The translations under genes were made by a program, and so were the position numbers. The notes beneath the pieces are model-generated. The model did not search any database. It was not told the origin of the DNA and was given only the letters and a program-made list of their open reading frames with translations. From Thalia democratica (taxonomy: Eukaryota): a stretch of 64,000 nt of DNA. Below, piece by piece: positions 2,514 through 33,600 of the stretch. Position 1 is the stretch's first letter, and each line of letters begins with the position of its first letter. The stretch spans positions 70,122,001-70,186,000 of the forward strand of contig OZ241830.1 in assembly GCA_965202585.1 (NCBI GenBank), given 5' to 3'.

Positions 2514-2580
2514 GTGAGACAAGCTCAAGTTTACGAAAGGGTCGATCATCAGACCACTTGTAAACTTGAGCTTGTCTCAC
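2514..2580. repeat. 67-bp hairpin with perfect 21-bp arms
   Basis: gtgagacaagctcaagtttac (2514-2534) is the exact reverse complement of 2560-2580; further pairing aag-ggtc/gacc-a-ctt inside. Confidence 0.9.
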
Positions 2581-8500: not shown

Positions 8501-10381
8501 CATATTTCAACGCTTGATTGAGTTTAAGCCGTCATTTTAACGCGTATTTAAACAACAAAGTCTGTGGGGTGTAATGTTTTGCCCGTAGCCCTTTTATTTT
8601 CACACACAGAGCTGTTATAGCGTAGAAAAGTTTAAATCATAACTCCTTGGATCTTTAATTGTTCGAACGCCAATCGTAAGCGTTTGAATAAATAGTTAAG
8701 AAAAGTTTCCTACTAACGACTAAAAAATTTCAGTTACTAAAATTTTCTTAAATTAAATCATGAATACTGATCCTAAAACGTCTAAATCTCTATCAACATC
8801 TATTGTAAGTGTAACGATCAAAACTTTCAAACGTTTTAATGAACAATATTTAACACACTGAACTGAACACGTTAATATATAAAAAAATTCTTAAAAAATA
8901 TTTAGCTTATAAAAAGTATGATAAGTCTAATTTACTTTATTCAAGCTATTTTAGTTTAAACACTATAATTTTTGTAAAAAGTATAGGAAAAATTGTTCAA
9001 ATTCAATTTGTTGCGGAAAACAACAACACAATTTTCAATAAACGTTATAAAAAATATTTATAAGCTTCTTGTTAACAATAGTCGTTAAAATTTTACTTTT
9101 ATTGATATTATGCTAAAAAACTTCTTTAGAACGCTTAAGTAAAATCACATATCTTTAGACTGTTTGATGCTACTCATTAAAAACATTACTTGAAAATATT
9201 TAAGGTCGAAATTTTAAAAATTAATTTATTGTCAACAAAAATAGATCTTTAATTCTACCTTTACCTAAAAAACCAGCTGCAGTATATAAACCAGGATTTT
9301 TTTTTACATTTCACTTAAAATTCAACGGTAAACAAATAAAAATCTTTCCACTCCAGTAATCACATGTTATAAATCAATATAATGTCATTAATTATGTTGC
9401 TTCACAATGCACCTGTGTGCTAGGTCGGAGTCTTTATAGAGATATATAATTTGATTATATATAGGCGGAAAAAGAAGTAACAATGTTTCATAGCGGCACC
9501 CTTTGAATCTTTTTTACTTTATCTGAAGTATAAGTTCTTTTTTTTTTTTTTTTTCAAAACTTATATGTTTTGTGTAGTGTATTTAAAAATATATAACAGG
9601 CGTGATAAAAACGTACTGTATCATTTTTGTTTTTAGATGTTTATTTTTACTGCATTTCAAAATTATTAGTTATAACCTATATGGTTCAAACTTTACGATA
9701 AAAAGCTAATTCTAAATAAATCATTGACCAAATTTTTAAAGATTATACTGATTGATAAACCAATAATATTTGAAAAGACGTAGGAAATATATAAAAATAG
9801 AAAAAAAAAATGTTTTTGACGAAAATTTTCATATAGTTTTTCGATGTAATAAAGCTTAAGAATTTATTAAATTATATAATTTATTATTTTGAAGTTGTTA
9901 AAGTGATTGTTTTTAAATAAGTTTCATAACAAAAGTTAAACATTAGTTAATTAACAAAAACTCATAAAAATTTAACCAAACGGTAATGTAAATAAGCGAC
10001 AACAGAATTAGCTGCATAAATATTTTGAATTAAAGCACAAAATGTTGTATAAGTTTAGATTCAAATTTATGGCCAATCAGTTGAATAATGATTTGTTTAA
10101 CTGATTGATTTTAATATATTTATTTCTACTTTTATTATTGAGTAAGTTTAATTCAATAAATAAACTAATATGTATAATTTAAACTAATTAGTCTTTTTTT
10201 ATGAATAAAGTTATATTCTACTCAACTTGAAAAAATAAATCAGGCTATTTTTATATGAGCGCCAAAAGCTGTCGAATAAAAAGCCATAAGTAAAAAAGAC
10301 CAACAAAAAGAATAAATCAAAGTAAATTAAATAAAAAATGCAGTGCCCGCACCGCTTATCTTCAATATTATGACGTCACAG

Positions 10382-10534
10382 TTAGCTGCAAATGGTTTTT
10401 GAGGAATCGTTATGGAGGGGAGTGGTGCAGGAGAATGTTGAGATATCGTAGCTGTGGGAGGATACGGAGGGGATGCTGTGAACCTCCGAAAAATCAGAAA
10501 TCGAAGAGGGAGTCTGGTCCGAGAAGTTAGTCAC
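10382..10534 (-). CDS. isl: Islet paralog A, terminal exon
   Basis: 153 nt, same length as B exon 7; open frame [20 protein letters not shown]...KTICS then TAA. Confidence 0.9.
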   Translation of the reverse strand: MTNFSDQTPSSISDFSEVHSIPSVSSHSYDISTFSCTTPLHNDSSKTICS

Positions 10535-10935
10535 CTAAAAAACAAATGGAGGTGATAAAATTCAAATAGTAATTTGTTAATAAGTAACATTGTAAATAAC
10601 ATAATAATAAACATAATAAGTAACATAAGTAAGATGAATTAACAAATCAAAACTAAATTGTACAAATATCTCAATGAAGATAAAACTTTTTTCAAAACGT
10701 AAATAGACAGTTAAAACAAGATAAACAAAAACTGAGACATTTTCAACTACATAAAACAGTTCATTATTTTAGATAAAAACTAATTTTAACCATATAGTAT
10801 GAAAGTATAACAAATTTACATTACATTTACTTAGACAGCTAGTTATAAACTTAAACTAATAACACAAAAGTTTTTAGTTACTTAAGAGTATTTTAACTAA
10901 TTTTATGTTTAAGAAATTTTTCAACAATAACTTAC

Positions 10936-11130
10936 TAGTTGCTGAAACGGGGGTTTTTCAATTTCGCTTTGCAATGCGAAATCACTCAGCGCCTTCCAAG
11001 CTGGTTGCTGTCGATGCTGGTAACTTGATTGGTCCACGTTGTTGTCTGTGGACTGGTTAGAAAATTGTCCTGGATCGTTAATATTTTGGTTTGTTGCGTT
11101 TCGTTCGTCGTTTGAGTTGGACGCATCTTT
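10936..11130 (-). CDS. isl: Islet paralog A, exon 6 equivalent
   Basis: 195 nt, same length as B exon 6; AG/GT sites intact; KDASNSND...[23 protein letters not shown]; 47/65 aa identical to B. Confidence 0.92.
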
Positions 11131-12587
11131 CTAAAAATAGTTATAGAAATTTTAAAAAGATTTGTTTAATAATTTTCAAATATACATAATTTATTCTACT
11201 GTTTTTCGTATTACATTACTTTTTAAACGATGACTCTCTCCGCTTTTAAGTATTAAAAAACCAACCTTTTGGCTAATCAAAACTCATAAAACTTTAAATT
11301 GGTTCAATCGACTGCGCAATGAATAGTTGATTGATAGTTTTACAATCGATACAGTTATTTTCTTTCCTTGATAAACACTTAGTTATTGATTTACAGAGAC
11401 ATGCAACAAACTATTATGTTACGTAATAATCTGCTTTTGGTTATGACGTCACTGTATTGAAAAAATTCGGATTTCATATTGTGTGATGTGGATTTGAGGC
11501 TCAAAAACTTATCTCACACACAACCAGCCTCAACGCTCTTGTTTATTACAAAGCGCTTTTTATTAATGGGCAGTAGTTTTTTAATCGATTTTAGACAGGT
11601 GTTTCTATAAGAATTTATTTAGACACTACCTTGAAAAAAGTATAAAGTTTTTTTATTAATTCATTCTTTTCAGTTTAATGATTAACAACGTATTGTTATT
11701 TTATTGTTTTTAGAAAATGGTTATACTGTGTGTTTGTGGTGCACGCCTTGATGACCGAAAAGTTTTTTTTTACATCTGATCCTTAGACCAATTGTTTTTA
11801 GCATTTCGTTTTCGTGTTTTGTTAATTCACTTTTGTTATTGATTAAATAAACATTTAATAAATAAGGTTAACAGTCGGAGCAATGTTATTAAAGCAATTA
11901 ACCTAAATTTGTTTTAAAAAATAATTTTAGTTATAAAAAACTTAAAAAGAGTTTGAACTTTATAATTATTTTTTCTTTAGTAGTTGTTTACATTTATACT
12001 GATAAGCATAAGTTTCATTAAAAATTTACAACAAAATACGCAATCATCTACAACAGGGAATTGTAAGTAAAAACTGAATTTCTTTTATTGAAAAATTTAA
12101 TATTTGTTTATATTATTGTAAATACCGGAAAGCTTTCTGAAGCTACTTTCTGAAGCTACTTTCTGACGTGTGTACGTTGAATTTTTTATGCGTTTCTAAT
12201 TATGTTAATTTAGAAATTAAACACATGTCACTCGCTCATGCAAATGAAGGAAAAATACAAAAAAAAAAAAAACTAAATGGTTTTTGAACTGTAAAGTTTG
12301 AATAGCTATAAAATGTAAAAGAAAACTTTTAGCACAGCAAGTTATCTAAATAATTTTTATTAAGTTTTTCCATCTAAATATAAACTCTTCATCAAAAAAA
12401 GAAAAATTTAAAGAATTTAAATTCTTAAAAAAATATTACTGATTTGTTTAACCATACACAGTTGAAATCAAACTTGTTAAAGAAAAGTGGTTTTTATCAA
12501 AACTGAAGAGATAGTACTTTATGTTGACAAGCTACTTAAGTTAAAGATGCACAACACACTTCACTTATCAGATACCTTTTTAAAAAC

Positions 12588-12687
12588 NNNNNNNNNNNNN
12601 NNNNNNNNNNNNNNNNNNNNNNNNNNNNNNNNNNNNNNNNNNNNNNNNNNNNNNNNNNNNNNNNNNNNNNNNNNNNNNNNNNNNNNN
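12588..12687. other. Assembly gap (100 N)
   Basis: Run of exactly 100 N; homology to Islet B intron 5 stops at its left edge. Confidence 0.99.
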
Positions 12688-14579
12688 AGTAGAAAAGTAT
12701 TTTTTGTTGTAAGCCCGAAATTATCGTATTAAAACAAGATGCAGCTTAGATGGAGGTTTGAAAAAACATTGTTTATAATACTTAAGCTATGAATATTTAA
12801 ACTGCTATAAAAGTTCCGATTAATGCTGTTTTCTTTTTTATCTATGAATAATACTTTAATAAGTAAAACTTAAAGCACTTTAATAAACACTTTATTTTTT
12901 TGAATATTAATCTTCTAAAACTATTTCAATTTAAATACAAGCTTGATTGATGTTCCATTGAAAACACTTCAATACTTATCAACTGCTTTAGAAAAAACTA
13001 ATAAAAAATGTACGAAAAGAACAACGCTATGTTTCACACGAAATTACAGGGAAAACTACCAAAAAACTATTAAAATTGACCCCCACTTTTTAAGTAGAGT
13101 TTCTTTTGACAGAAATGAATGTTTAATAGGCAGCCGGCTTAAAGGTCTTAATTCTGTTTAAAAAACTTTGCTGCAAACTTATAATAAACAATTTAAAAGG
13201 CTACCTAACAGTTGGGTAATATTTAAACACTTGGTAGGTTCTGCATAAGTTAAATACAAATTTGTTAAGTTTAAAGATGCGTTTGTATAGTAAACTAAGT
13301 CATCATATTTTAAAATTAGCATATTTATTAACATAAAAATACACATGTATATACTTTAATGATAATATTGAGCTAGAACACAGCTTGTATCTAGAATAGA
13401 AAATAAAGACATGTAAATAAATTATAGTTCCTTATTAGGGTAGTCAGTAAATATAATCAAAACTTGAAAGTTATGTGTGGTAAGGCTATTAACTTTAAAT
13501 TCTTTTTTTAAAGCTCTGATGATTATTTATGAAAATTATATGTTAGAGTTCTAGTTGTATGTTGACTGTATGGCAACTGACTCTCACTGTTTAATTTTAA
13601 CTGCAATAAGTAAGTCCACAATCTAAAAGTATTCTAATAAGCTCGATGACAAAGATAGCTGATGACAGGTCGTTAAAGCGTTCAATTTCAAATTTCTTGA
13701 ATCCAAATTTGTAAACATACTATTATTTTTTCTAAAGCTGGTCCAACAACGGAATGTTTTCAATTTAGAAATGGAATAATAATTACTAAATGAGGTTCCG
13801 TTACACTATTTTCATAATCATATGCCAAGTAAAAAAAAACATTAATAAATACTTTAGATAATAATAAAAACAAAAACAAATGCTACTTTTGCCAACCAAA
13901 AAATGTGAATCGCATCTGCAAAAATTCTTAAATATTGTAATAACCCATTGAAAATCGGTGCAATTTTGTTTTATAACTTAATGTCTGGATGGTAAACATG
14001 ATAACAGTCATCCAATTATAGTTTTGTGCCCTTTTGCTTTAAGTTAAAATTGTACTTAAAATTAAAGATTAAAAATTAGCGATGTATGATAACCTTGCCA
14101 ACTTGTTTTAGTTTGACAATATGGAGTTTAAACAGTTTCCATACTAATGAACACTAATACATGCCTGCTTACGGTGACAACTCTACATAAAAGTATCCAC
14201 AATCAAACGTTATTTGCAGCTTAAATTAAAAACAAACATTTGACTATGGATGATAAGTTTCTATTAATTATTGCTACTTCGACTAAAAGTACAAGATTAA
14301 TAACTGTATAAAAATATTTGCTGGCACCACGTATAAAAATAATTTTAAGTTTTTAAGTAGTTAAACTTATATTGATTTTATAAAACCTTTTTTTTTAAAT
14401 TCTATTTTTTATACTGTATATTTCGATAAAATAAATAGTTAGCGGAATTTTATGAAAATAGTTTTGTTTTGTATTAACTATCTTTTCTGTTTCAAAAATT
14501 TTAATCTTTAAAATTTTTACTACTCAATTTTTCCATACTTTTCAGATATTTTGCTTTTAACACGATAGCAAAAAGCCAT

Positions 14580-14780
14580 ACAAACCACATTTTGCATTAG
14601 ACTCAGTAATTATCAATCCGCAAAAAGCAAACAGAATACATTAATGCACTTAATTACATTCGAGTTGATATGTTGCTTGGTGATATGTTGCTTAGTAACC
14701 GCGATGCTCGTTGCCATGCAAAATTAACTTGCGGCTATCACCATGAAATTTTGTACGCTTGATCAAGCGTTAATAACATT
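14580..14780 (+). promoter_or_regulatory. Conserved element E1 with clustered RFX X-box-like sites (other copies 45360-45620, 55460-55660)
   Basis: GTTGCTTGGTGAT 14672, GTTGCTTAGTAAC 14687, GTTGCCATGCAAA 14710; the first two are invariant in all three copies. Confidence 0.6.
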
Positions 14781-16809
14781 TTTGTTTTTATTTTTAACAT
14801 CTCAACCAGTTTGCTTTTTAATACAATTTTGTATTATTTCATTTTTGTTTTGTTACATGTAGCAATACGGTTACAAACTTTCTGTCAAACATCTGAAGTC
14901 TGCAATGATCTTGCAATAAAGCTTACTTGTTTTTGTAGTTTTGTGTTCAAACATGCACGTTAATCTTAAATTTTTTTATTGAAAATGTTTCTATCGACTT
15001 AGTTCAACTTTATCAATTTATATCAAACTTCTTGTTTTAAAAGTATTTTGTATACTTTTGCCAACTCTTATGAATAAAAAACAGATATAGCAGCAAATTA
15101 TCGACGTAGTTAATTTTACAAAGACCCTAATTTATATTTAAATTAAAACCCTTAAAGTCGTTCATTTTTCTGGAGATTTTAGATTTAAATAGTAGAAAAG
15201 GTTGTTGTAGCATTAGCTGAAAACTTCGTTACTAAAGTGTTTAAATATAAATTTAATTGGCTACGTAGTCGACTAACTTCAACAGTTCAAAAAAAATCTA
15301 AAGTACATATAAAAATATGATATTTTTGGAAAAAACTTTTATTTCCGAATAAAAGCTCTAAATACTAAACTTATACTATGTTGCTAAATTCTTTTAATTC
15401 TAATAAGTTTTAATGTAACTTTTATGTTGTTTATCAAAAAATTTTTAACGCATATCTTGTAATACTAATAAACAAATCTCAAATAAAGAAAACTGTATTC
15501 AAACGTATACTTGTCAATTTAAAACGTATATTTGTCAAATTTACTGTCAAGTTTTTAGCATTTAGGTTTCTACTAGAATCAGAAAAAAGCTTTCTTTGTT
15601 TTAGTAAGGAATAAATGATAAATTGATATAAAATACTTACCCAAAAACACTGACTTAAATTAATTCTGATCTTAAGATCTGTTCAAGCATTCAACATATC
15701 TTTTAAACTTAAAAAACTGTTTGTGACTTACCACTACATCAAAATATTTATCTTGCGGTTATCAGTCGCCATCTTAGACATTGAAACTTTACATTGAGGA
15801 AGCAAAAAAAAAGCGTGGCGCCAATTAATTTTTAATGAAGATAGTTTGTCCTTTTTTTTGAGCCATCAATCTTCAAAGTAACACAACAGAAGAGTCTAAG
15901 ACGACAACTAATAAGAAACTCATGCAGTTTCGAGGGTAGAAAACTTTGTTAACACTTTTAGATTTGTCATTTTAGCTGCAATTATGATTAACTTGCTTTG
16001 CATTTGGAAGTAGAAGTTTGTGCTGGGTTCAAAATAAGATGAACAAAACGCATAAATTTTTTCTTTATTACTTTTGTTTAAGTATTTAAAACACACTATT
16101 TATATTCCTTAAAAATGAATTCTTAAATGGTGTTTTAAATACTGCCTCTAGTTTAACCCGTGAAAGCACATCGTCAAAAACTAAAGAACATCTTTTACGT
16201 TAATTACTTGTCTCATCGCAAGTGTACTGAAGGTTAGCAGTGAAATTGAAATCTTCGTGCTTTTATTTCATGATTCATGGTTTTACTTTTGAACATGCTT
16301 TTGTCATTTTTGAATCTGTTGTAATAGTGTGTGTTAAACAATTGTTAAACAAATATTTATGACAAAATATGTTTAACGCAATTTTCTCGTAACACTCAAA
16401 ACAGCCGCTAGTGAGGCGACAAGGAGCTGTAATAGAGCGAACCAAGAAAAAAAAAAGAGAAGGAGAGAAAGAATTTCAGCAAACTTTTTATTGTTACTGC
16501 TGCGTTTAGGTTTTTGTTAGAAGCGCAACAGACAAAAAATAGAGTAAAAGCTAGTAAGTGTTTGATTAAAGAAAGTTAAGTTACTGTAAGTTTTTTTTAG
16601 ATATTAGACGTTTTGTTTAATACAGTAGGTTTATTGATTTTTTTATTTAAAGCTGCACACAAAAAAAAAAGCTTAAATGTTCTTTTTTTTTATATTTCTT
16701 TTTATTGCATTTAAGGATCAATGGTCGTTTTTAAATTTAAATACATTTTTAAAACTAAACCTCGTTTTTATGTTTTTTGTGGTTGGTGGGAAATTCAAAC
16801 AAAAATAGC

Positions 16810-17160
16810 CTTTTCAAACTCGACTTTACAGCGCTACAACAGCTGTGTGTGTAAAAATGTCGTACATAAAAGAAATACACGCGAAATATTACACCCAACA
16901 GAATTTGTTGTGTAAATACGGGTTAAAATGGCGGCTTCAACTTAATCAAGCCTTGAAATATGTGGTGACGTAATAAAGAAAAAGAGGTTAGGTGATGATG
17001 TTTTTGAAATTTAATAAAACCCTGAACAGCTGAACAGAGGCTTTTAAGTTTATTTCTATGGAACAAGTTTATAAGTTCTCACGTTTGATTGAAGTATTTG
17101 ATGTATCAATGAGACACCTGACTTGGATAGTTAATTATTGATTTTATTGATTTGTACAGA
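16810..17160 (+). promoter_or_regulatory. Conserved element E3 (copies 57080-57440 on +, 8300-8640 on -)
   Basis: Three-way conservation with CAGCTG E-boxes, TGACGTAA and CACCTG; function inferred. Confidence 0.5.
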
Positions 17161-18879
17161 AAAGGCAAGTATGTGCTGTTCATTGCGGTTTGTATCTAAT
17201 CAAGGTACTGATCAAATATATATTTATACAATTAACTAAAATGCAGATTTGAAATAGTTGTTTTCAAAAGTAAGTTGTATAGAATTGTCAATTAATTTTA
17301 ACTCAAAATACTATGCTAAACAAAAAGCTAATTAAACTCTTACATTGATATATTGTTTTTAAATAAAACAGTAACTACGTAATCATTTACAAAATGGCTT
17401 GCGAAACAAGTATGCAATTTACTAGATTTATAGTTTGATGAAAAATCTATGCTATACTTATTTAACTTGAACCATAAACTAAAATATTAACAAAAAATCG
17501 TTTGATACGTATATAATAAAGAGAAGAATAAAAATCTTGTGGTGTTTTAACAATAAAGCTGTCCATTAAAATCACAAAATTTTAGCTTCTGTTTCTACTT
17601 GTTTATTACTCTCTGTTGTAAAGTGCTTCTTAATTGACAAAATGTTGACAATGATATTGACTAGATACGATCCTTGTTTGTGATTAGGCGAGGAAGAAAT
17701 GTTTATTTGTTTTTATTTAACTCGCAGTTTGTTAAAGTTTTCTGTGTTTGTTATAAACGCTCATAGCTCAAAAGTAGTCAGTATGCTCTTTACAGAAAAA
17801 ACTGACGCTGATTTTGAAGGTAACACAAACTTATTGTTTTTAACAACACAACACGGTAGCGACAGTTTAAAACTTTCTAAAAGTGTTTTTTAAAAACGTT
17901 TCTGAATCTTATGTTTTCTTGCGGGAATATAAGAAGCGCGACAAAATCGGTAAACAATCTGCTTTGATTTACCAATACATTTTATCATAACAGAAAACTG
18001 CCTGGTGATCCCACACATACTGTGAGCGCGTTTGTGTAGTGATAAAATGAAAAAATAATACGGATTCCAACCAAAGCTTTGATCACAGAAAGTGTTTTAC
18101 TGTAAAACTTTTTAAACTATTATTAACAATGCAGTTTTTAATGTGGTTGGGTTAACCTGTATGTACAAAATTTTTCAGATTTGAAACAAAAGAAAACATA
18201 AGCTCTTAAAGTCTAATATCAATCTATGCTTTTGTGGCAACAATATTCAGCTTAAAATAAACAAAACTTTCTTTTCTAGGATAAAAATAAGGTGTTAGAA
18301 AAATGATTTGTTAAGTTTTCAGTCACCAATTGACCCGTATTGGAAGTTATATGAAGTTATAAATACTTCAGCAAAATTACTTTAATAAAGTTAATTGAAT
18401 AATTAGTTTTACTTTCACTGCAAGATAAACGTAGTCACATTTTGAACATAAATAGTTTTTAAAAAAATATCTTATGATTAATTACAATTAAATAGGTATT
18501 TATAAAAGAATTATATACATAGTTTTAAATGCAATTAGAAAAAAACTTTTACACCCTGGTGTTAAAACATACAGTTTACTTTGAAATTTACATTTATTAC
18601 ATGAATTAAAAAAAAATTAACACAAAGTATTTGCTATTTATTGTTTGAATATTTGTGTTGTTGTATAAAAAATAATTCTTACAAAAATTATATCAGAAAA
18701 AACATGAATCTAAGTATGTATGCTTTCGCAATTTATTCTTCTTGAGTTTAATAGAAATGTAGGTTTATAAGTAGTAAGTGTAAGACAGCACTGCATAGTT
18801 TAAATTAAAAAATTGAAAAGCTTATATTAAAAATAGTATTTTTAAATTTTCGTTTAAAGCAATGTAAAAAACGCGAAAC

Positions 18880-19060
18880 AGATAAAAACAAGTTTGCAGT
18901 ATTGAAATCAATGATGAGTTGGCAAGCTAAAATGCAAAACAGACATTTTAGTTACATTTTACACGTGTTTTCATTCAAACGTTCTGACCATCAAACATCA
19001 ATCAATTTTACGTCAGAATCGCAAACGAAAATAGAAAGCGGCGTTATTACGTCATAGAGT
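18880..19060 (+). promoter_or_regulatory. Conserved element E4 (copies 58780-58950 on +, 6330-6510 on -)
   Basis: Three-way conservation with a CACGTG E-box and TTACGTCA sites. Confidence 0.5.
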
Positions 19061-20889
19061 GTACAGTTTGCCATCTATAGCAAAGTAAGTTTGTGGCTGT
19101 CTTGTTTACTTCTGCTTGTTCTAAAGCATTCTTAGCAAAGTGTTATTCTGCCGATTACGCTTAAAACTTTTATAGAAATTCTGGAAGCTTGTTAGTCGCC
19201 ACTCGTGTCTAGAAAGATTCAGCTGTTTCAATTTAAATCGTATCATTTTTATGCGGACTAAAGTTAAGATTGTTACTTTGATTTAAAAGTATTTGGGTTA
19301 CTCTTTTAAGACGGTTAATCTTTTATTTTTGTGATCTAAACCCGTATTTCAATTTTTGGAGCTATTATAAGTACTATAAGAAATTAGCGATAACATCGTT
19401 TTAACTGTTTAAATTTATATGTTACATTTATTAAGGCCTTTTCAAATATAAACAACTTATATACCAGCTGTTCGTATTTAGGAAGTGCGTACCTAGTTGG
19501 CAGGTTTACTGTCTTTAAGTTTAAATTTATATTTTACATTCGTTTTATTAAGGCTTAAAAATAACGGTATAATATCTTTTTGAATATAAACTGCTTGTAA
19601 AACTAAAGACTTTAATTGTTTTATTACCCTAATAGAAACGGAATAAAATTATATCATATTTGCGATAATATAAATATAAGTGATATCGCTTAAAAACTTT
19701 TTATTGCGGATATTTACACAAAATAAAAACCAATATATTCTCTTCAAATTTCACAATCCAACTAGATAAAATTGTAATGTAAATTATTGTTTCAGAGTTT
19801 AGAAAATGATAAAAAGGTTGTTGTATTTCTTATTTTTTGCAAACATGACCTACTAATCTATAACAATTTTTTAAAAAATAGTTAAGTGTTGCTTATAAAC
19901 TGACATTAAACTAATTATAATATTTTGTTTTTTATATAAAACTAGTGTATAGTGCTCTAAAAAACAAAATAAATTAAATTACATATTAGATAAAACACAT
20001 ATATAGTCAATAGTCTGTACTTTATTTTTATTAAAAGGTAATGACTGTTTTATCTAGTATATACTTAAAAAATTAGAACAAGGTTTTCATAGTACAGTGC
20101 TTCCTCGCTTTCTGGTCTTCGCTTTTTCAGCTCCTTGCTAATCCGGCAGGCTTTGACTGAAAGGTAGATTTGTCTAATTCAGCTAAAGCCATGTTTTATT
20201 AAAGTTATGTTTCTAATATTATTTTTATAAATAAACATGCAGTTTATACTTCCGTCATAATTCTAATGTATTTAACAAAGTTTTGTTTCGTTTATTTTCG
20301 TCGATTTAATTGCTTTTTTCATTAAACAACTAAATCAAAATAAGTTAACGGAAAATTTAGTGTGCGTCTTGTTGTACGCACTTTTTAATTTGAATGGATA
20401 GATAACTAATAAAAAAAAAAACTATTTGTTTTTATTCGGCCAAAGGCTAATCGGGCTATTATTTTTAAGCTTGCCTAACGTAGCCGGATAATCGAGAACG
20501 TTCCTTATTAGCATATTATTACTGCTGAGAGTTACTATCGATCAAATAATGTCAATGAAAACAGGTTTTATTTTAGATTACTCTTTAGTATTGTAAAACA
20601 ATTATTCAATAACATTTAAAAAATTACTGTTATGGTTTTTAGCTTTTCAATACATTGTAAAATAACTTTTTGTTAAACTTTTAATACACAAACTGGAAAC
20701 TGAAAATAAAACTGTATTTCATCAACTTTTTCAAATCTACAAAAAAAACTATAAAAAATACCATGATTTGACACAATTCAACAAAGCTTTAAGCTGTCTA
20801 TTACATCATCATACTCGTAATACTACAACACTTATTTTGTTTATTACGTCGCATTTTTATATTCTACTTTCATGGCAATAATTCAAATA

Positions 20890-21050
20890 TAGAGCGACTG
20901 ATTGCTAACAGCAACGCGTTTCAATGCAGATTTAACACATGATTGCACACCGTTGCGCTACCGTTAAGCATGAATCAATCACATTTTGAAAATATTTCAA
21001 AGCGTGTGACTTGACACAGCAATTACTACTTTCGCATCATCTGGGCGGGT
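20890..21050 (+). promoter_or_regulatory. Conserved element E5 (copies 60810-60970 on +, 4850-4980 on -)
   Basis: Three-way conservation; inverted TTGC-N5-GCAAC motif. Confidence 0.5.
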
Positions 21051-23279
21051 TTACTATTAATCCTTTGTCTTGTTTTGAAAACCTGATATCAAAGTAATTT
21101 GTAAACCTTGATAGTTTCACAAAATAAATGCAACTGGAATATATGAAAAAAAATTAGTTTACTTGTTAAACAATTGAATAAACTAAAGTTGTCTTTTACT
21201 AATTAAACATTGTACTTGCATTGTGTTCAAAGCTTCAAGTGAAGTTCTATTTATAGCTTCTAACCATATTGTTCTCTCACAGGAAGTAACAATTAACTGC
21301 AATTTATTAATCCAATTAAAATTTACAGACTCGGAATTCTATCTGTATGTGAACATTGTATTAAAGATTGTGCATGTGCTGAAATTTAAACAGTTATAAT
21401 GTCCTAGCTCGCTTGCTTATGAGTCATATCGGCTTACTAACAACTTAAAAGGAAATTACAAATAGTTATAAATAAACACATACAAATAAGTTTAAGTAAT
21501 TTTGTTTTTAGATATTATTTGAAACACATATAGTTATTTAGTTAAGCATTTTACTAAGGTTTGAAAAAAAAAAACTGATAAAAGTACCTACGAACAGTTA
21601 TAACAGAATTATTTACATTATTATTTTTTGTGTATACGGTATAACAATTAAGGCTTTAATATGATATAAAATTTAAGTAAAAAAATATAGTGATGCTTGT
21701 GAATTGACAGGAAAATACCTTAAAATAAAGTTTTTTATTGGAAAAAAACTTAAAACCACACGATATGAAAGATTAATCGCGAAATATTTTGGCATGCAAA
21801 ATGTAGTGGATATATGTATACTTCGTGTTATTTGGAACAAAAGAAGGAAGTGTTTGCTGTTTTGTTTTAATTATAGATCTATTAATCTCCATATTTCAAT
21901 TAAATATTTCAAAAGTAAAATGAATAGATCTTAGAAGATTTTATGTTTGCAATTTGTTTTAATAAGTTTTTAACTGAAAACTTAGTATACAACTTGACAT
22001 GTTTAGAATGGCACAAAACTTTAGAAGTACTTTTTTAGTGAAAATTGTTAAAAAAAACGTTTATTTCTGAAACTTAATCATTCTGTTATAAACATTGAGA
22101 ATATTTCTAACGAAGACAACTAGAGTTTTAAAGATTTGTTTTTATCTACGACTCATAAAATATGATAAATTAGTTTTTACAGCTCTTGAAATTTAGCTTT
22201 AAAAGCACAGTCGCTAAATTAAAAACAAAAAGCTAATCATATTAAGTGGCAATAAATTTAAATTTTATTTACCTAAAAGCCGTTAATGTTTTATTACAGC
22301 AACAAATTGTAAATTAAACAAAAGACTATTTATGCTCATCAAAGTAAAAGTTGTCTTTTATTAATCAAATCTAACGAGCGCTAGCTTTACGAAACTTTCA
22401 TAGCTGTTAAATGACAAAAAATGTACATTAGTATGCAAACTAGTTAATTAGAGACAGAAAAAGGCTTTCTAAGTTCCTGATTGCCAATAAATTAAGATAA
22501 AACACATGTTGCTGAAAGATTGTTATTTTTTATGCGCAATAAAGATAATTGAAAACAAACATATTTTTACTTTGTCAGCAGGTTTTATCTAATCTCTTTT
22601 TTTATTTGCGTCTTGTACTTTTATTCCAAGAAAAAGCTACGAACCTTGAAAGCCTCTTTCTAAATTTTTATATGTTTTACGTAACAAAAGCTTTACATCA
22701 AAAGTATTTCGTTCAAAAAATAGAGAGTATTTAATTCTCGTACAAGTTAATTAAAATATTTTAATATTCAATCATGTATTTTTTTTAAAACTCTTGATTA
22801 GCCAAGTCGTCATAATCACGAATTTTTACCGATTAGCTTTCGTTATATTTACTTAGAAAATAGTATTAAAAATATTCAATCTTGCTTTATTTAAACTACC
22901 TTCTTTTTTATCCAATAGCTGTATAAATATAGGTGTAAAGTTTTTTATCGCTTATTTTTCATTGAAAATTTTCAATTCTTTTGTCCTTTTTTATTTCATG
23001 GCGCCGGTCACAAACTCTCTCAAGAATTTAATCTACAAAAGGGAGGCCCCTTACAACCACAAGCAAAAATGGAGAAAGATGTATTACTTTCAAGGGTTCT
23101 TTTCAGGATTTTACGGTTTGAAGTATTTATATAAGTGTGATGATGAGTGCGAACAGAATTGCTTGCTTAGAAGTGTATGTATTTGTGTTGTGTCAAAATT
23201 TTGTTTACTACTTTATACTTGTTTTGTTGCTTATCTTATAAGTTTTTACAACAATGGTAAGTTCTCTGTATAAACGGTA

Positions 23280-23340
23280 CCGATTGGTTGCTTGTAGCAA
23301 CAACTAATAACGAGATTGTGTTGGCAGAAAACCGTCGAAG
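23280..23340 (+). promoter_or_regulatory. Conserved element E6, about 1 kb upstream of the Islet ATG (copies 63178-63232 on +, 2730-2790 on -)
   Basis: ATTGG (CCAAT) directly followed by GTTGC-N5-GCAA in all three copies. Confidence 0.5.
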
Positions 23341-24282
23341 TTTTTAAATTTTTCTTAATAAATTTCTCCAGTGGCAGATGTGCAAATAAATAGTTATAGC
23401 AGAACCAACGTATCATTATCGTGTTTAGGAGCTATTTACCGAATTTGTTTTGATATATACTGGTTTTCAAAGACACGGGTTCAATTGGCAGTTTTGGTGA
23501 TAGAAACATTTAAAATTTACAGACTTTAATAATTAATAGTTTTTGTTACGTTTTCACAACACAATGTTGCGTTTTGAAATCTTTTACAAGTTGAGTTTCA
23601 AATGAAACTTTACTAAGAACGTAAAGTAGTAAAAAACTTAAACAACGAGGAAAAAAAAAATTTAGTTTACTAAACTTGTTGATAAGAGTTTATTTTTTAA
23701 ACCTGTTTTAAAAATGTTTTAAATATTTTAAAAACGAATGATGCTTAGACTAATTCTAATAAAACTAGCTAAAGTTTTAATCGAGTTTATGTTAAACGAG
23801 AACAAAATTAAAAACATTAATTGTATATCATTTTATTAATTATAAAAGTATTCTGTTGTAAAATAAAATTAATCTTTTGATTTATCAAATAACTTTTGTT
23901 TGCTTGAGTAAAAATATTTCATGAAAAGCAATCATGTAGCTGAACTAAGGTGTATTGATAGTATGTAATTGAATTCTGTTTGAAATGTTTTTTATTTTAG
24001 AACTTTTTATCAAAACCGCTGAATATTTAACATTTTTGATTTTTCAGTTCTAAATAAACTGATTAAAAAGTGTACTATCAACTAGACAAAACTTGTAAAT
24101 AATTATAAGAAACCAGCTTTTTTTTTTCGTACTTGTGTCGTTATAGGAGATAAAAAGTAAAGAAATTGTAAAATGAATAACAAGTTGATTTACTTGTAAA
24201 GCGCAAAGTAGTCTGCAAACTTAACATCGTTTTTTAGCTTATATTAAAATTATCTTAAAACTTGTCAAAATTGACCAAACGT

Positions 24283-24303
24283 ATGTCATCAAATCGGGCG
24301 TGA
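24283..24303 (+). other. Possible uORF (MSSNRA-stop) ending 1 nt before the Islet B ATG
   Basis: atg tca tca aat cgg gcg tga g ATG. Confidence 0.35.
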
Positions 24304-24304
24304 G

Positions 24305-24602
24305 ATGAAAACCTCTCAGCAGATGGTCCAATTGACAAGAAGCCTTCCACCTTGTCAGAAACCACCAGAAAGTCAGGACATTTTTGATTGGAATAATTTT
24401 GACGACTACTCGGTGGGCAGCAGTTCCCAGGGCTACTTCTCACCTGAGTACCAAGAAGGGGGAAACACCGGAAGCGAGATGAGTTTTCACTCAAACCAGG
24501 AACAAGTTTTGAACCGGGGGATGACCCCAATGTCGAGCGGGTCAAGTCAGATTATGATGAATGAAGATCTTAAAAATACCGACACACTAAAAAATAAAAG
24601 AG
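24305..24602 (+). CDS. isl: Islet B exon 1 (99-aa Ser/acidic N-terminal region)
   Basis: ORF MKTSQQ...KNKR; donor G|gtgagt at 24603; phase 1 matches exon 2. Confidence 0.8.
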
Positions 24603-27600
24603 GTGAGTAATATTTATATAAAATTTTATTTTTCCGTACTTTTGATGTTTAACAAATTCAAAAATAATTAAATTGGAATGTTTGTCGTTTATGTTAATGT
24701 TTTACTTAAATGTGTTTTAAAATGAGTATCTTATATGATGAATTTACTTCAGTTGAATTTCAATACTTCAGTTGAATGCAGAACTTATCTAAATATGATT
24801 CTGAATGATCAACCTCAACAATTTAATAAAATCTTCTTAAAATTTTTTGCTAGTTACATAGCAAACTAAAATTTTAATATTTAATTTAGTATATTAAAGT
24901 ATCTAATTTCTTGTAACATAAAATTAAGTACTTTAAATATAAAAATACTAATAATTTAAAATGTCAATTTTGTCTTTTTATAACGGAAAAGTAACATCAA
25001 ATAAAAAACATTTACAAAGAACTACTAAAGTTGGTGTTCATATTGATGATTTTTATATATAATAGTTTGTTGTAAATTAAATGATAAAATACTCTTTAGG
25101 TCTTCTTACCAGGACTTGTATGAGTTGTGGTCACTTGATCCACGGTCCCTACATCAGCACCTCACATGGGGTCGACTGGCATTCAAAATGTCTCAAGTGC
25201 GCCGCATGTGGTTGCAACCTGGCTGATATGGGAACCTGCTTCATTAGGAACAACAAACCTTACTGCAAAAAAGATTATTTACAGTTTGTTTGTTTTAAAC
25301 AGTCTTGTATATAAAATCATAAACTTAAAGTTTATGTTTGCATTATTTCTAAGTTTATAATTTAACATGAGCTGATTGTATTCTAAGCTAAAAGTAAAAC
25401 ATATATAGTAATAGTTTAACAATAAAACTAATAGAAAATTTCTAAGAAATTAATTTCTAAAAATAAGTTGTTGTTAAATATGTTACAATAGAATTTATAA
25501 ATTTAATCGAAAATAAATTTCTTAATTCAACAATTATGCATGCTAAAAAATATAAAGTTGTATTCAAAAATTAATACATAAGATTATTTCTAATAATTTT
25601 ATTTTGATGACATTGATAAATTTTATAGAAAACGTAATTTTAAATATTTAATAATGACGTGTAACTTGTTAAAGAGTATTCAGCAGAAATACAAATATTA
25701 ACTTTATAACTTTGACACTGTTGATTGAAAACAATTGTTTTTAAGTTTAGTTTGTAAAATTTTTGTTTGCATAACAAAAGTAATTTAAATTTTTCCATTT
25801 GTCAAGTTGATTTCGCTTGTTGACTTAGTAAACTGTCGGTTTGATTAACTCACATGTAAATAAATACTTAAACGAAAGTATGTTGTTATATATCTTTTGA
25901 ATCAGTTCAAGTGGTTATTAAAAACAAAAGCTTAAAGAAAAATTTTTTTTACTGATAAATTAATGTAAATTACTTAATAAGTTTTCTTAAACAACAAGTT
26001 TCACTAAAGAAAGAAGGGTTTATATGTAATAAAAGCTAACTGTAACAAAACTTTGATATTTTGAATATTATAATTTTTGACTTTTGTTTTGATAAGAACT
26101 GACTTTATTTTAATTTTACACGTAAGTTCTAAACTTATTCATAAAAATAATATTGACAAAGTGATTAGGCAAAGCAGGCGGTTAAAATCAATAACTTTAA
26201 ATTAGTTTGCCACTAATTAACCTTTTGTGCTTATGCTTAAGTATTATTTTTTATAAATAACTAAATATAGAATGCAAGAATTCACACTTTTAAGTGTGTA
26301 ATCGCAAAATATTAATTTAATTACTTTCATACATGTATAAAAACTTTGTGGATATTTAATTTCTTCGAGCTTTTGTAAATCATTTATGCATGTTAAGTGT
26401 TATCAAAAAAAAGTTTAAACATAAGCAGTGTATCTTTAATCTTTTTTTATACTTGGCAATTTAAATAACATTAAAAAGGTTAAAGAAAATGGTTGGTTTT
26501 TTAATTAAAGTTTTGAGTACTTTGGACTTGATCGCACTTAATAATCATCTATTAAAAATGTTTTTTAAGAAAAAAATAATTATGTAGCATCATTATTAAG
26601 CTCATAAATTTTTTTTTCGGCATAAAAAACTCGAAAGCGCATTACAATAACCTTTGAAAACGGACTTACCATAGTTTTAATTATTCAGTTATCGAAAATA
26701 ATCATTTTTGTTTTTGATTACTAACTGCTTATTAAGTTGTCAATACTAATTATAATTTACAGCATCTACTACCCAACTAAGAAGTTTTGAGTTAAACCTA
26801 AAGTTTTTCAAAGTTTGTTTTAATGAAAATAATATTATATGAAAAATAAATACTTTATGCTGTCTAAAATGATTTTTAGTTGTACACCTTACACTTTTCA
26901 CTTTTCTTAATCAAAACTTTAATGCAGTAATCATAGACATATGTAAACATATGACAAAGGTAACGGAATTTGTTTAATGTCTAAAGATGATTATCTGAAT
27001 AAACTCAATTCTATTGTTGAAGATAAAACTAAATTCAAATTAGTAGAAAAGGAAAAAAGGAAAAACTCAAGACACCCCCTAATAAGAAGAATAGAGAATT
27101 TAAGAGAAATGATAAAAAAAAACCTTAAACCTTATGTAGACAAAAAGACATATAACAACCTTATTACAGGTGGTAACTCTACGGGCAATTTATATGGCAC
27201 GTGTAAAGTTCATAAAAAAGATTACCCATTGAGACCTATTGTATCAATGCTAAACACACCGTCATATAAATTAGCTAAGTATCTGGATGTAACAATCAAA
27301 CATCATATCCCAAAAAAGTATTGTGTAGAAAACAACAAAGAGTTTTTAGAAAAACTTTCTAAATATGAACATAAAGACGGTGATTACTGCATTAGCTTTG
27401 ACGTAGTCTAACTATTTACTAATGTACCACTAAATGAAACTTTACAGATGATTGCAAATGGAGTACGTGATAGTACCATACCACAATCAAACATGTTAAA
27501 TCTTTTAAAGTCTGTTACTCGAGGTTTGTTCCAATATGATAAGCAATTATATACACAAATAGATGGCGTAAGCATGGGAAACCCACTAGCGCCTACTATA

Positions 27601-30600
27601 GCAAATTACTTCATGGGAACATTGGAAAAAAAAATCTCTTTAACACCGAAGATGAAAATAATCCAGTTTTATACCTTCGATATGTCGACGACATATTCTG
27701 TATCTTCCGAAAAGATGTTTCATTCGAAAAATTCCACAAAAAGTTAAATAAACTACATAAGTCTATCAACTTCACATATGAATTAGGTGGAAATGAACTC
27801 CCATTTTTGGACATTAACATCAAACTAAAGAGAGAGGAAATAACAACAAAGGTACACAAAAAAGAAATTGATACAGATGTCATTTAAAATTTTAGTGTAG
27901 TGGCACCAATTAAATGGAAAGAGCTCTAATACTGTGGTTTGTAAACAGATCAAGAATTATAGCTTCTACGCATAACATTTACAAACAAGAAATCACAAAC
28001 TTAAAAGAAAAATTCTTTAAAAATGGTTATCCAAAGAAATTTGTTGATGACATAATTGAAAGTTCTCTTAATATTAATAAAGACTGCACTAAGCAAAAAC
28101 TAAGTAACTCTGACTTCAAAAATATTGTAAAGGTACCTTATATTGGAAAACCTAGTATCGAGTATAAAAAGAAACTAGAAAAGCTTCTAAACAATTACAT
28201 CGAAGACTTCAAAGTAATTTTTACCACAACAAAAGTAAGCAATTACTTCAGTAATAAAGATAAGACACATCATGAATTAAAATCAAACGTGGTCTATAAG
28301 TATAAATGCTCTTATGATAAGAGTATCTAGTATGTTAGATTCACTTTACGACCATTAATAGAAAGAAATAAAGAACATTTAAAAGGCAAAACATCTGTAT
28401 CGGACCATATAAGCAATTGTAATATTTGTAAAAATTAAAAAATAGCTGTTAATAATTTTGGAACTTTGAAAGAATGTAGAAATAAATTTGAGACCCTGAT
28501 AAATGAAGCTATACTAATTAAACGATATAATCCAATTTAAAAAAACAATTAATTAAACTGGATATTACCCATACATTAAGAATTTTTGATTAGTTTGATA
28601 TATATTAGTTTAACAATTTGTTAGTATTTATGTAAAATATTATTTTAATATAGTTTATAACCTTAATTTATAAAATTTTTATATAATGTATCACTTAAAA
28701 AATTTTTGTATACTGAGTTGTTTATCACTAATTTTAGTTATTTTTGCACAGTATTTTGTTGATAATGACTAATGAAAAGTCAAAACGTCGTCATGCGAAT
28801 AAATTATAAACTTAGAATGTGTTTCTTATTGAATTGGTATTTTGATGAAAATGTTTAACGTATTAATAAAATATAACTTTAGTTTTAAATAAACATATTA
28901 GAACCAAGCTTAAAAATTTGTTAGGTTTTAGTTAGATTCACAGTTTGATAAAATAAGCACAATAACAATTAAATTACTGACTACTTTTATACAAATTGTG
29001 TATTATTTTTTAACATTTGGTTTCAGCTCTTTATTGTCATTAAGTTAATTCACGCTCGCCTTTGCAAGACTTGTGGTAGTATGTTACAAGTTTCAAACAA
29101 GTGCTTTGCGTTCAAAGAGATCAAACCACTATTGTGACGTAACAACAGAACAGGAAACTCGAGTGCGCTCAGTGGAGTGTGTCAATCATTAATAAATGCC
29201 GGTTGTTGCTAGGCAACCTCGCTACAAATAGGGGAGGAGCAATTAAAAGGTTCCGATCTCACACACGAACCTGACGTCGGCCGACAAGCAACTTGCGACG
29301 TCGAATTGAGGCTTGTCTCTGTCTCAATTGCCCCTTGCCGAACTTTGAAATACTAAACAAATGTCTTGCTATACTCATACCGTATCATCACTTATATAAA
29401 AATGATATTCATAAAACTCAAGTTGTTATTTGAAGTGATACAAATTAAAAGTTTTGTTTACAAGTTGTAATGCTGAAAACATACCTGATTCAATGTAAAA
29501 TTTATGACGTCATAACCAACACCGAAGGCTACTTAGCAAAGAAGTGTCAACACTTAACTAATATTTGACAAATTCATTTTCTCTTAGAAACAGTTTGATT
29601 CATGATGTTTGTGATACTACCATATTTCCAATTAGAATGCGTAAAGATATTTATGTGACAATAGATGGTGGTTGCTTATAGGCTGCTGTTACTTTGTCGC
29701 TTGCAGTGGTCGCTTTTGGTATAAAGTCAAAATATCAGTTAACACAGCTTTAGTTAAATATAGAACACAGTCAAATGTAAACTTATACAAACATAGTTCA
29801 AAACTGTAAAAATATGTAAAAGTATTTTCATTATCATTCAAACAACCATAAACATCATTTTACAAAATTATGTTACTTAATTTTTATGAGAGTATTTCTG
29901 TGATATTTTAGACATAATTTAATTAAAGGAAAACTATAAACCATAAAGCATAAACACGCTAATAAGCAAAGTGATGAAAAGCATAAAACTTTCAGTTTTG
30001 ATATTTTAGGACACTGAGAATATTAATAAAATAAGTTTAGTAATGTTTGCATAGCTAATTACAAGTTGAGAAAAAAAAACTGTTTTTCTTTTGTACTTAC
30101 AGCCTCTAAAACAATCAATAAACGGTTTTTGATTTGCAAGCTGACTGCCGTCGGAAATTCAAATGACGTCACTCCAAATGACTCAATGTCTGCTAAAGGT
30201 CGTAAGTTCAAGTTTACGAAGTTTTCCCATATGCTAGTTTTGCGATGGTGTAATCAATAGAGTGGTGATTGATTGAAAAACAGTGTTTCTTAATAGTGTA
30301 TGCAACTGATTAAGATTCGTTTATTAGTTTTCGTGCTTTTTAAAAAATCAAAAAACAAACGACAACTGATACACTAATACAACATACTCGAACGAAATTA
30401 AAAATCTGAAAAACTTTTTAAGGATTTGCCTTAAGTTACTACAATTAGTTATACTTCTAAATTACCGAAATTATATAGGAAAAGCCGCGAAGTAACAGGA
30501 TTTTAATAACAACATAAAGTACAAGAAATAGCGGTTTTTATCTGCTTGTGTCGCGACAGCCGACATATGTTATCCACTGCAAATAACTCTGCTTACTTAT

Positions 30601-33600
30601 CACTGATTCTACATGTCTTATTTTTCCTACTTAACCGAGCTTTGATTTTTTTACATTAAAAATTTTACAAAGCTTTGGAAAATTTCAGGTAGAAAAATGC
30701 GCATGTTGTAAAACATAAGCATTTTTTTTCTTATTTCTTATTATTCAAGGACTTACTTATTTTAAGAATCAAACCATGGCCCAAAAAACACCTTTGATTA
30801 TAAATGGTTTGTTTTCATGTCCAAGACTAATGGATATTTGATTAGTTATTCAATAAAACTTTAAAAAGAACAGCCTTAACTCAAGTCTCGTTATGACGTC
30901 ATAATAGCTGTTGAGGTCAGCTTCCAAGTTGTAATGCGGATCACGTCACATCAGTAAGATTAATTTCTTTTGATCCGGACTTCGACAATTCGCCAAACTG
31001 TATAAACATACAACGGCAAAAAAAAATAATTAGGCTAAATTTGCACTTCAAAACTAAAATTACTTTAACAAGAACTTATTAATTATCAACTTGATGAAAA
31101 TTTACAGAGTTTTTTTGAATTAGTTGTTACTAACAGTATTAAAACCTAAGCTTTTCGATATATTCTTAAAGGTAATATAACACCCACTAAGTCTATTAAA
31201 TAACGCTTAAAACTTTATTAACTGAACTATAGAACGTCGTTTAATTAAAAAATAAAAATATTGATTTGATGGATTTTCCTATAATTAGTTATTTTTTGTA
31301 CAAAAATTATATATTTTTACATTGTGTCTATAAAACAGCAATTTTAATATCAGTTTACGAAACGCTTTAGCTTTTATACTTGTAATTAAAGCTTTTTAAT
31401 AGCAATTTTATTGCTTTTTTTTTATTAAAGAAAAATTAAGTTTAATTATTCAAGGTATACTATCTGCATGTTTGATATTTACAACTAACTTTAAAATTAG
31501 TTCTTTTATTTTTGTTTTTCAGCTTATTTGCGCCAAAATGCGCAAAGTGCAAACTTGGACTGGTCAAAGGGGATTTAATGATGACCGTCAGAAATAAAAA
31601 GTACCATGTTCAGTGTTTTAGGTTAGTAAGAACAATTAAAAAATATTACAATCTATGTTTTGTAACCCATAAAACAGTCAAAACTTCAGTAACGTGCACA
31701 TTGTTATAAAAGTAAACACTAACCAGAATCAAATGATTTCAAAACAAAACTGTTTGAAACTGGTTTTTGTTTTGTGTTAAACCAAGTATATATAATTATT
31801 ATTCATGTTGTTTTGCATACATGACATTTAAATGACAGTAATTAATAAAAGTTCTTTGCTATCAAACAGGTGTTACGCCTGTCACAATCAACTGATACCA
31901 GGAGATTCATTCGTGTGTAACGAAGATGGAAGCATCTACTGCATTAAAGATTATGAAAGAATTTTCAACAAAATAACAGATGACAGCAGTATTTTTGGTG
32001 AGCGATCTTTAATTTGTACTCATACATTATACAGTTTATTTGGATAAAATATTTAAACTTTGCATGTTAATTGTAATTAATTTTATGTACATTAACATAG
32101 TTATCACCGCTTTTTGATGTTTTATGATTAGAAAAAACGTTTAGCAAAAAGGGTGTTTAGTTCAGAATTTAATGACAGTTGAACAGAATTGTTATATTTT
32201 TAAGAGTTTGTCCTCTGCAAAAAAAAAAGTAAAGTAACTTAGATTTACTTATGAAATTAAAAGACTTTCTAACTATTTTTTATAGATAATTTAACTTTAA
32301 ATCCAGTTTAGGGACATGCTACTAAAATACTTTAGCCATTAAGTAAGGGTTTATGCAACTTTAACATCAAAATTACCGCTTCAACCACTCGTTTACCTCT
32401 AATGCATGAGATATTAGAAGCTGAAGAATAAATCATTCATGCGTATAAAGTCCCAACAACTGCCGGCTACTGTGCGTTAATTGGATAATCCGTGTTATTT
32501 AACCTCGCACAAACAACCTTCACACATTATAATCTCATCATTTTTTCCGTAAAAAAAATTGATGAGATTAGTAAGTGCGAGGTTATTTGTGCGAGATGCG
32601 CTTTTAATACCTCTTTGATAGTTGAAACACGTTAGTGTTAAGAACTATTGGCTCTTTCATGTTTTCATTTTTCTTGTTTTTTATTATCCGATTTAACTTG
32701 CGATAATGCAATATTAATTCTTGGCTGTATTGATACCGTTGCTTTGCTTATTAAAGGATCTCATTATATTTTTTAATCACGATGTTTGTGAAAATTTACT
32801 ATAAATAGCTGCGGTAAATAAATTCGACAAAAGTTTTAAAATTTTTATCTCAAAGTTTGGTAAAAAAAGCTACAAAATTGTTATTTCATTTAGAACTTGT
32901 AAAGATGCAAATTAAGTCAATAATTTAGGTACGTTTAAAATTAATAGTAGCTCTTATAATTTTTTTTTACTCATATAGTTCTATTAGTTGTTTTATTTTG
33001 ATAATTTTCGAACAAAAATGTTTTTGTTTTTTTAGATAAAGTTTAAAACTTTATTTTGTTTCAATACCTAAAATCGAAGGATTGATTATTATGCAACTCA
33101 CACAAGTGTGACCAAACAAAAGCTGACAGCTTATTTTTAAATATTCATTAAAATAACTGAATGTTATATGAAAAGACTTCAGCTGTCATTCTTTAAATTC
33201 ATCTTAAGTTCCATAGTAAGTTTTTCTCGTGAAACCGTAATTTAAGTATTAAAACGACTATAAACTCACCTGCTAAGGCAGAAGGTTTGCAAAAAAGTCA
33301 TTTAACCTCATTAACTGCCGCAGTTAATAAAATGGGCATTATCGGAGATTTGGATAAACTTAAAATTACTTATACAGACGGTTGAATATTTTGCTTTGTG
33401 CTAGTGAAAAAATATATATCCTTAGTTTCTAATAGTTTTGTTTACAAAAATATTTTTTTAAATAATTACAGAGTATTTTAGAATACAAAAAAAGTTCTTA
33501 ATTTTGCTAAAGTATATGTCAAAATATATTTTAAGTTTTATACTGATCATAACATGCTTTAATCATCAGACGCCATTTTCTACGTAAAATAAGTTGAGGT

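Follow-up and report, generated by a model that had tools for sequence, protein, structure and literature searches.

Genome comparison points to an old paralogous Islet gene tail that ends at an assembly gap in a Thalia democratica Islet array

The window analysed here is a stretch of 64,000 nt of Thalia democratica DNA (G000:C6:70122001-70186000, part of a genome of 802 Mb that was searched as a whole), and positions given without a prefix refer to it. It contains the last two coding exons of an Islet copy on the minus strand (copy A), which is cut in intron 5 by an assembly gap, and on the plus strand a further Islet copy (copy B), whose upstream exons encode two LIM domains and a homeodomain. 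The features of the window are as follows:

10382 to 10534, minus strand: exon 7 of copy A, the last coding exon (153 nt, 50 codons and TAA)
10535 to 10935, minus strand: intron 6 of copy A (401 nt, GT..AG)
10936 to 11130, minus strand: exon 6 of copy A (195 nt, 65 codons)
11131 to 12587, minus strand: 3' part of intron 5 of copy A, with homology to other copies up to the last base before the gap
12588 to 12687, no strand: assembly gap of 100 N that cuts copy A in intron 5 and marks the right end of contig X
9154 to 10381, minus strand: 3' flank, or putative 3' UTR, of copy A, homologous to 39423-41112 of copy B
1 to 9153, minus strand: remainder of contig X in the window, the exon-depleted Islet relic R (upstream-like region from 8631 to 2864, intron-2 pieces from 2464 to 2136)
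12688 to 24300, plus strand: contig Y, far-upstream region of copy B, with no Islet exons on either strand
38734 to 39422, plus strand: exon 6 (38734-38928), intron 6 and exon 7 (39270-39422) of copy B, the comparator used in the first-pass annotation

Both exons of copy A translate without stops, each is preceded by AG, and exon 6 is followed by GTAAGT. As the first-pass annotation had stated, exon lengths (195 and 153 nt), splice sites (AG and GT) and stop position are the same in A and B, and the length and stop of exon 7 are also those of eight other copies on C6. The exon structure is that of the family (a phase-0 junction between exons 5 and 6, a 195-nt exon 6 and a 153-nt terminal exon), the exon junctions agree with those of a spliced relative (P0003), and exon 7 contains NFSDQ, SIPSVSS and C-terminal ICS motifs. 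In exon 6, A and B are identical at 47 of 65 residues, and a recount of the 18 differences returned the split reported earlier, with 17 in residues 1-42 and a single one (Q/R) in the last 23 residues; in exon 7, 40 of 51 positions are identical when the common stop is counted. The tblastn matches between the exons of A and B (E = 4e-27 and 1e-20) mean that the likeness is not due to chance, and at the DNA level the homology extends, inverted, over ~3.4 kb including introns and the 3' flank (A from 12585 to 9154, B from 37302 to 41112). Copy A had been described as missed by the ORF track, and indeed no listed ORF of 60 aa or more lies there. Contigs from one public run, which looks independent, match A with zero differences at 10097-10474, 11712-12008 and 12181-12514; the contigs of all four runs examined are short and span introns and flanks and were hence treated as DNA, the kind of run being unrecorded.

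The first-pass annotation had called A a second Islet paralog, which is wrong: exon-by-exon searches of the whole 802-Mb genome returned 11 homeodomain exons on C6 (69.82-70.27 Mb) and 13 on C4 (36.17-36.72 Mb), with matching numbers of exon 6 (11 on C6 and 12 on C4) and exon 7 (13 and 12). The LIM1 exons number 11 good and 3 degenerate ones on C6 and 13 on C4, and one further C4-like LIM1 copy lies on an unplaced contig (C899). The genome holds at least 24 (~25) Islet units in two arrays, ~11-15 on C6 and 13 on C4. Pairing of the exons on C6 gave ~8 complete units, several decayed ones (gene 13, which has stops, and genes 4, 5 and 7, each without an exon) and three orphan halves, namely one 5' half (gene 9) and two 3' halves (A and c15). 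Taken alone, copy A is one more member of an array, and possibly a broken one. Between the Islet genes lies, once per repeat unit, an intronless ORF of 323 aa with kelch repeats (window 52247-53218, plus strand), of which partial copies occur at window 42095-44888 and also on contig X.

The palindromic CRE octamer TGACGTCA occurs 12 times in the window against 0.4 expected (at 156, 702, 10371, 11444, 29505, 30164, 30894, 35495, 38423, 39426, 46140 and 53128). One of these octamers (10371-10378) lies 4 nt past the stop of A and is found at the same spot in B and in most C6 copies, a second one is conserved in intron 5, and both octamers of the counterpart segment of B are kept in A. This distribution suggests putative bZIP/CREB-type sites in the Islet regulatory landscape.

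Exon 6 of A consists of a variable Lhx3-binding-like stretch (codons ~14-45, ending PAW) followed by an invariant motif. It was this conserved segment that had been taken for the homolog of the Isl1 Lhx3-binding domain, an assignment that does not hold. The chain of the Lhx3-ISL1 fusion in PDB 2RGT has as its last residue the W of ...VEVQSYQPPW, where the Lhx4-ISL2 chains of 3MMK and 6CME stop as well, so that the Lhx3-binding domain comprises the ~30 residues up to and including W. Judged by sequence, the domain labels are therefore reversed: the variable 30-40 residues before W are the homolog of the Lhx3-binding domain, and the invariant segment is a pan-Islet motif immediately after it. 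The correction turns round the functional reading of the 17-versus-1 split, as the part that varies is the putative partner-binding stretch and the part that is frozen is the motif. In A this post-domain motif (W-K-x-LSDFALQS..PxFQQLV) is the family consensus, and it is common to sea urchin, ascidian and other Islet proteins. Just the C-terminal half of the binding stretch is recognisable in A (V-D-Q-S-x-Y-Q..PAW), the N-terminal PMVA-type motif being absent; the PMVAxSPxRH half is unrecognisable in all 23 exon 6 copies (e.g. 11130-11005 and 38734-38859) and in P0003 and P0014. A phmmer search with exon 6 of A against PDB returned no match, Pfam has no family for the tail, the literature that we examined assigns no function to the pan-Islet motif, and searches of protein databases found no predicted or transcript-derived protein with the exons of A. 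What the two exons would encode is an Islet tail made up of a Lhx3-binding-like stretch that has degenerated, the 23-residue pan-Islet motif in frozen form and a C-terminus rich in Ser.

Copy A lies at the right end of contig X, a contig of 51 kb (window -38367..12587, C6 70083633-70134587) with a 100-N gap at either end (C6 70083533-70083632 and window 12588-12687), both of them in an Islet intron 5. Over its entire 51 kb X is collinear, inverted and at 82-93% identity, with C6:69832329-69888848. The latter interval starts with the 3' part of gene 1 intron 5 and gene 1 exons 6 and 7, continues with a relic depleted of exons (with a LIM2a pseudo-exon), then a kelch gene and an upstream region, and ends with gene 2 exons 1-5 (through the homeodomain exon) and the 5' part of gene 2 intron 5. 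This collinearity makes A the paralog of the tail of gene 1 (c1) and gene 9 that of the head of gene 2, and since the homology extends to both ends of contig X, these ends are breaks of the assembly and not of the homology. Relic R, downstream of A, keeps upstream-like and intron 2 blocks (window 1-8631) and has a LIM2a pseudo-exon with a stop and a frameshift at C6 70121176-70121294, ~700-830 nt to the left of the window start; the same relic lies between gene 1 and gene 2, with its LIM2a relic at C6 69846540.

At the other end of X, gene 9 (C6 70084853-70095681, minus strand) has exons 1-5 intact and is cut by the gap in intron 5. The orphan 3' half c15 (C6 70261256-70262445, minus strand) abuts a gap in intron 5 and, after ~1.9 kb that are missing, resumes the collinearity with gene 2. 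Because gene 9 and c15 are both collinear with gene 2 (at 89.6% and 91% identity, respectively), they probably make up a single gene that a scaffolding error has cut in two. The contig to the left of X (W) ends at the equivalent of window 54355, and the first detectable homology of contig Y is at window 14431 (1.7 kb inside Y), where it matches 55310; W and Y therefore abut in unit coordinates, so that X looks like an interloper between gene 8 and B. Judged from these alignments, the placement of contig X in the scaffold is most likely wrong.

At least three contig ends in the array fall within an Islet intron 5, including that at the gap at C6 70263306-70263405, and the left end of contig X is complementary to the contig bearing c15, 180 kb apart. 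The contigs of A and c15 both end within 6 nt of one shared short T-run/A-run palindrome, and as c15, which is broken in the same way, has an intact 5' half in gene 9, a break at this site is at least sometimes a failure of assembly. Copies are just 70-79% identical to each other in the break region of intron 5. Intron 5 of B contains an 18-nt minisatellite (~7.8 units of TGTCACYCCGTGCTAAAG, window 36448-36584), which falls in the part of the intron that is lacking where the contigs of A, c15 and gene 9 break off. A repeat as the cause of the breaks was considered and rejected, the minisatellite of B having no equivalent in gene 2. Gene counts for the array, or accounts of 'complementary exon loss', rest on a demonstrably fragmented assembly.

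The nearest relative of A is c1, the 3' end of gene 1, 300 kb off, and B is more distant. Intron 6 of A is 92% identical to that of gene 1 and 75% identical to that of B, and the 3' flank of A is 91-94% identical to the flank of gene 1. The earlier view of A as a paralog rather than an allele of B is supported. Genes 2 and 9 form an inverted pair (89.6% identical), as do genes 3 and 13 (95.5%), and the two ends of the array mirror each other, the left end reading 1(+) 2(+) relic(-) 3(-) and the right end 13(+) relic(+) c15+9(-) A(-). Copy A would accordingly mirror, as a 'gene 1-prime', the gene with which the C6 array begins, within a large inverted segmental duplication that would pair gene 1 with A, gene 2 with gene 9 and c15, and gene 3 with gene 13. 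Placing contig X beside c15, as we infer, would set A at the outer end of the right arm. The mirrored architecture dates A and identifies its proper comparator. Gene 13 (C6 70211845-70226489) is the inverted mirror of the intact gene 3 (C6 69920878-69935411), the identity of 95.5% applying to the 3' half. Its LIM1 exon is degenerate, its homeodomain exon is interrupted by a TGA and its exon 7 contains a stop, so that decay is under way in one arm of the inverted duplication.

A 5' half that would belong to A was sought throughout the assembly. No LIM exons of A were found in the window or in the 802-Mb assembly, the gap lying 1.46 kb upstream of exon 6, whereas B and gene 9 do have LIM exons; every LIM1 exon on C6 is assigned to a unit other than A. 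Nor was a homeodomain exon of A found, all 11 copies on C6 being assigned to other units. Between the gap at 12588-12687 and the first exon of B there are no Islet exons on either strand. A 5' half of the expected type (~85-92% identical to gene 1 exons 1-5) is absent assembly-wide, unplaced contigs included, and close paralogs of the 5' half of gene 1 are lacking, as the introns on either side of its homeodomain exon are at most 72% identical to all others. Intron 5 of A has no match above 82% in the assembly, which means that there is no haplotig. Nor does the missing half of A lie in the right flank of the array (C6 70263406-70288000), where homology to the side of gene 1 is lacking. A contig of run X2 that leaves A at 12574 into conserved intron 5 proved by exact match to be the intron of gene 8. 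The first-pass annotation had taken a lack of any upstream exons or transcripts as evidence against a functional A. Upstream exons are indeed lacking in the assembly, but A ends at an assembly gap, and their absence is therefore no proof of truncation.

The same annotation had proposed dN/dS on exons 6 and 7 as a check, which we ran as pairwise Nei-Gojobori omega over these two exons. Values are well below 1 and not near it: omega is 0.52 for A versus B, 0.27 for A versus c1 and 0.25-0.33 for A versus c2, c3 and c15, the last range being at the low end of that of the family (0.27-0.84). By region, codons 1-42 of exon 6 give 0.76 in pairs with A and 0.60 in pairs without A, the 23-codon motif gives 0.01 and 0.03, and exon 7 gives 0.33 and 0.57, respectively. 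In A, omega for the last 23 codons of exon 6 is ~0 despite 4-5 synonymous differences. Among the 23 copies compared, 19 have the same motif peptide, and the sites that vary in the motif are ~15 synonymous and 4 nonsynonymous ones, all four of the latter private to one copy; the peptide of A is the consensus, with 2 of 72 bases off the majority, one of them unique and both synonymous.

Changes on the lineage of A itself, counted as copy-private variants, amount to 6 nonsynonymous and 6 synonymous ones (P = 0.02-0.12, depending on the assumed neutral fraction; private bases at window 11125, 11082, 11042, 11002, 10969, 10530, 10529, 10444, 10439, 10418, 10412 and 10399), and the corresponding numbers in the pseudogene copy c13 are 6 and 5. 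The purifying selection that had been claimed for A is in keeping with the pairwise values (0.25-0.52) but shows weakly on its own lineage. In exon 7, A resembles c15 and c2 more closely than c1, whereas its flanks are nearest to c1; this mismatch of ancestry indicates gene conversion, which could keep a dead fragment looking constrained. Overall, the exon sequences argue for A having evolved under the same constraint as the intact copies and having been functional for much of its history; it may have died recently, or its intact look may have been kept by conversion.

From these comparisons, A is a real, distinct and old paralogous Islet tail copy, the sister of gene 1. It would form the 3'-terminal part, from the end of intron 5 through exons 6 and 7 to the 3' flank, of an old and distinct LIM-homeobox paralog of the Islet class, whose LIM and homeodomain exons would simply not be assembled beside it, contig X being misplaced. 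In the animal, A would still be joined to its 5' half and make a normal Islet protein. On whether A does belong to a whole Islet gene with an unassembled head, our judgement is evenly poised.

We also consider it possible, with our expectation leaning against it, that A is a truly truncated 3'-half pseudogene that owes its intact look to recent truncation, to conversion by live copies or to both. Exons 1-5 would then have been removed at the outer boundary of the duplication, or by a later rearrangement or fold-back at the T-run/A-run in intron 5. The absence of a 5' half from the assembly speaks for such a loss, as do the many inverted duplications of the array, its decayed units (relic R and genes 4, 5, 7 and 13) and the mosaic ancestry of exon 7, which suggests conversion. 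The shared palindrome at which the contigs of A and c15 end would also fit, but the like break in c15 has its matching 5' half in gene 9, so that the break site itself is no sign of truncation. The private substitution rate in the exons of A (3.4%) equals that in alignable non-coding DNA (3.7%), which counts for truncation; the exon rates of intact copies are, however, also near their alignable non-coding rates, and a comparison of private rates between exons and introns is therefore not discriminating. Since A and c1 split, substitutions in non-coding DNA have reached 10.7% and indel events 12.7 per kb, and the neutral expectation for the lineage of A is 2.2 indels in 348 coding nt; ~4.1% of neutral substitutions would create a stop. 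Against this expectation A has no indel (P = 0.11), no stop (P ~0.43 for ~20 substitutions) and a low ratio of nonsynonymous to synonymous changes over 7-15% neutral divergence, by which truncation of A at birth is disfavoured.

That A and gene 9 are one gene strikes us as improbable. Contig X would in that case be a circularly permuted, collapsed tandem unit, the ends of which meet in the missing ~1.7 kb. Both of its ends do lie in intron 5 (B-equivalents 35572 and 37302), both halves are intact and on the same strand, and in intron 5, genes 3, 12 and 13 are like gene 9 towards the 5' end and like A towards the 3' end. However, X runs from the 3' half of gene 1 to the 5' half of gene 2, its ends coming from two ancestral genes; gene 9 has its natural partner in c15, with which the collinearity to gene 2 goes on at 91%; and intron 5 of gene 9 most resembles those of genes 8 and 2, which at their 3' end are of another type than that of A. 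Marine tunicates can be extremely heterozygous, and the collinearity of X with the gene 1-gene 2 interval over its whole length would also be seen if A and contig X were an uncollapsed, very divergent second haplotype of that interval, but we hold this to be highly improbable in view of the non-coding divergence of 7-18%, the 37 indel events in 2.9 kb, the 22 of 115 residues that differ, the location of both members of the mirror pairs 3/13 and 2/9 on the main scaffold (gene 13 being a pseudogene) and the lack of a near-identical haplotig in the assembly.

The reading in which the head of A is unassembled can be carried further. Copy A would then belong, as its tail, to an Islet gene that is alive and expressed and that lies at the outer end of an inverted duplication of >100 kb, in a family of ~25 genes in which the Lhx3-binding-like stretch drifts or diversifies (omega 0.6-0.8) and the 23-residue motif is frozen (~0.01-0.03); taken as a whole, we regard this as unlikely. 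If true, the paralogs would differ mainly in their choice of LIM partner, and a pelagic tunicate would have an expanded 'LIM code' where the invertebrate rule is one Islet gene.

Vertebrate ISL1 and ISL2 have in common with A the post-domain motif (with its [DE]I-[DE]-xPxFQQLV end) and the C-terminal half of the binding domain (V-[ED]-x-Q-x-Y-Q..P-x-W), whereas the N-terminal half, PMVAxSPxRH, is unrecognisable in every copy here. Vertebrates have two Islet genes and this genome has at least 24, and A differs from ISL1 and ISL2 in that no LIM or homeodomain exons are assembled for it. The LIM-interaction domain is the least conserved part of Islet proteins, and in C. elegans the domain by which LIM-7 and CEH-14 interact has ~30 residues and ends A-Q-W, the W being a binding hotspot (PMC5496915). 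This end parallels the P-A-W of the putative partner-binding stretch in the copies here; unlike the family here, LIM-7 is single-copy.

The best named match in the C-terminal region is ISL-1 of the ascidian tunicate Phallusia mammillata (UniRef A0A6F9DG81, P0015), which has the exon 7 motifs NFSD, SSMSD, SIPSVSS, CSTPL and a C-terminal CS in common with A. Unlike the copies here, Phallusia ISL-1 keeps a canonical bipartite Lhx3-binding domain, and the PMVA-type N-terminal half is retained in sea urchin Islet as well. We know of no amplification of the Islet gene in Phallusia. Two full-length, spliced Islet mRNAs from a JGI metatranscriptome (P0003 and P0014) and exon 6 contigs from Tara Oceans (P0001 and P0017-P0021) have the exon 5/6 and 6/7 junctions as well as the invariant motif in common with A. 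At least six distinct exon 6 variants that are 74-80% identical to A lie on short contigs of L050 (ENA ERZ976226, PRJEB4352), which suggests that a related planktonic species, too, has many Islet copies. The matches to A in this range of identity are all exon ORFs of genomic origin, from a relative in a Tara Oceans metagenome. P0001, the sequence that was compared with the copies here, is at most 86% identical to them; the plankton sequences come from another species and none is the transcript of A.
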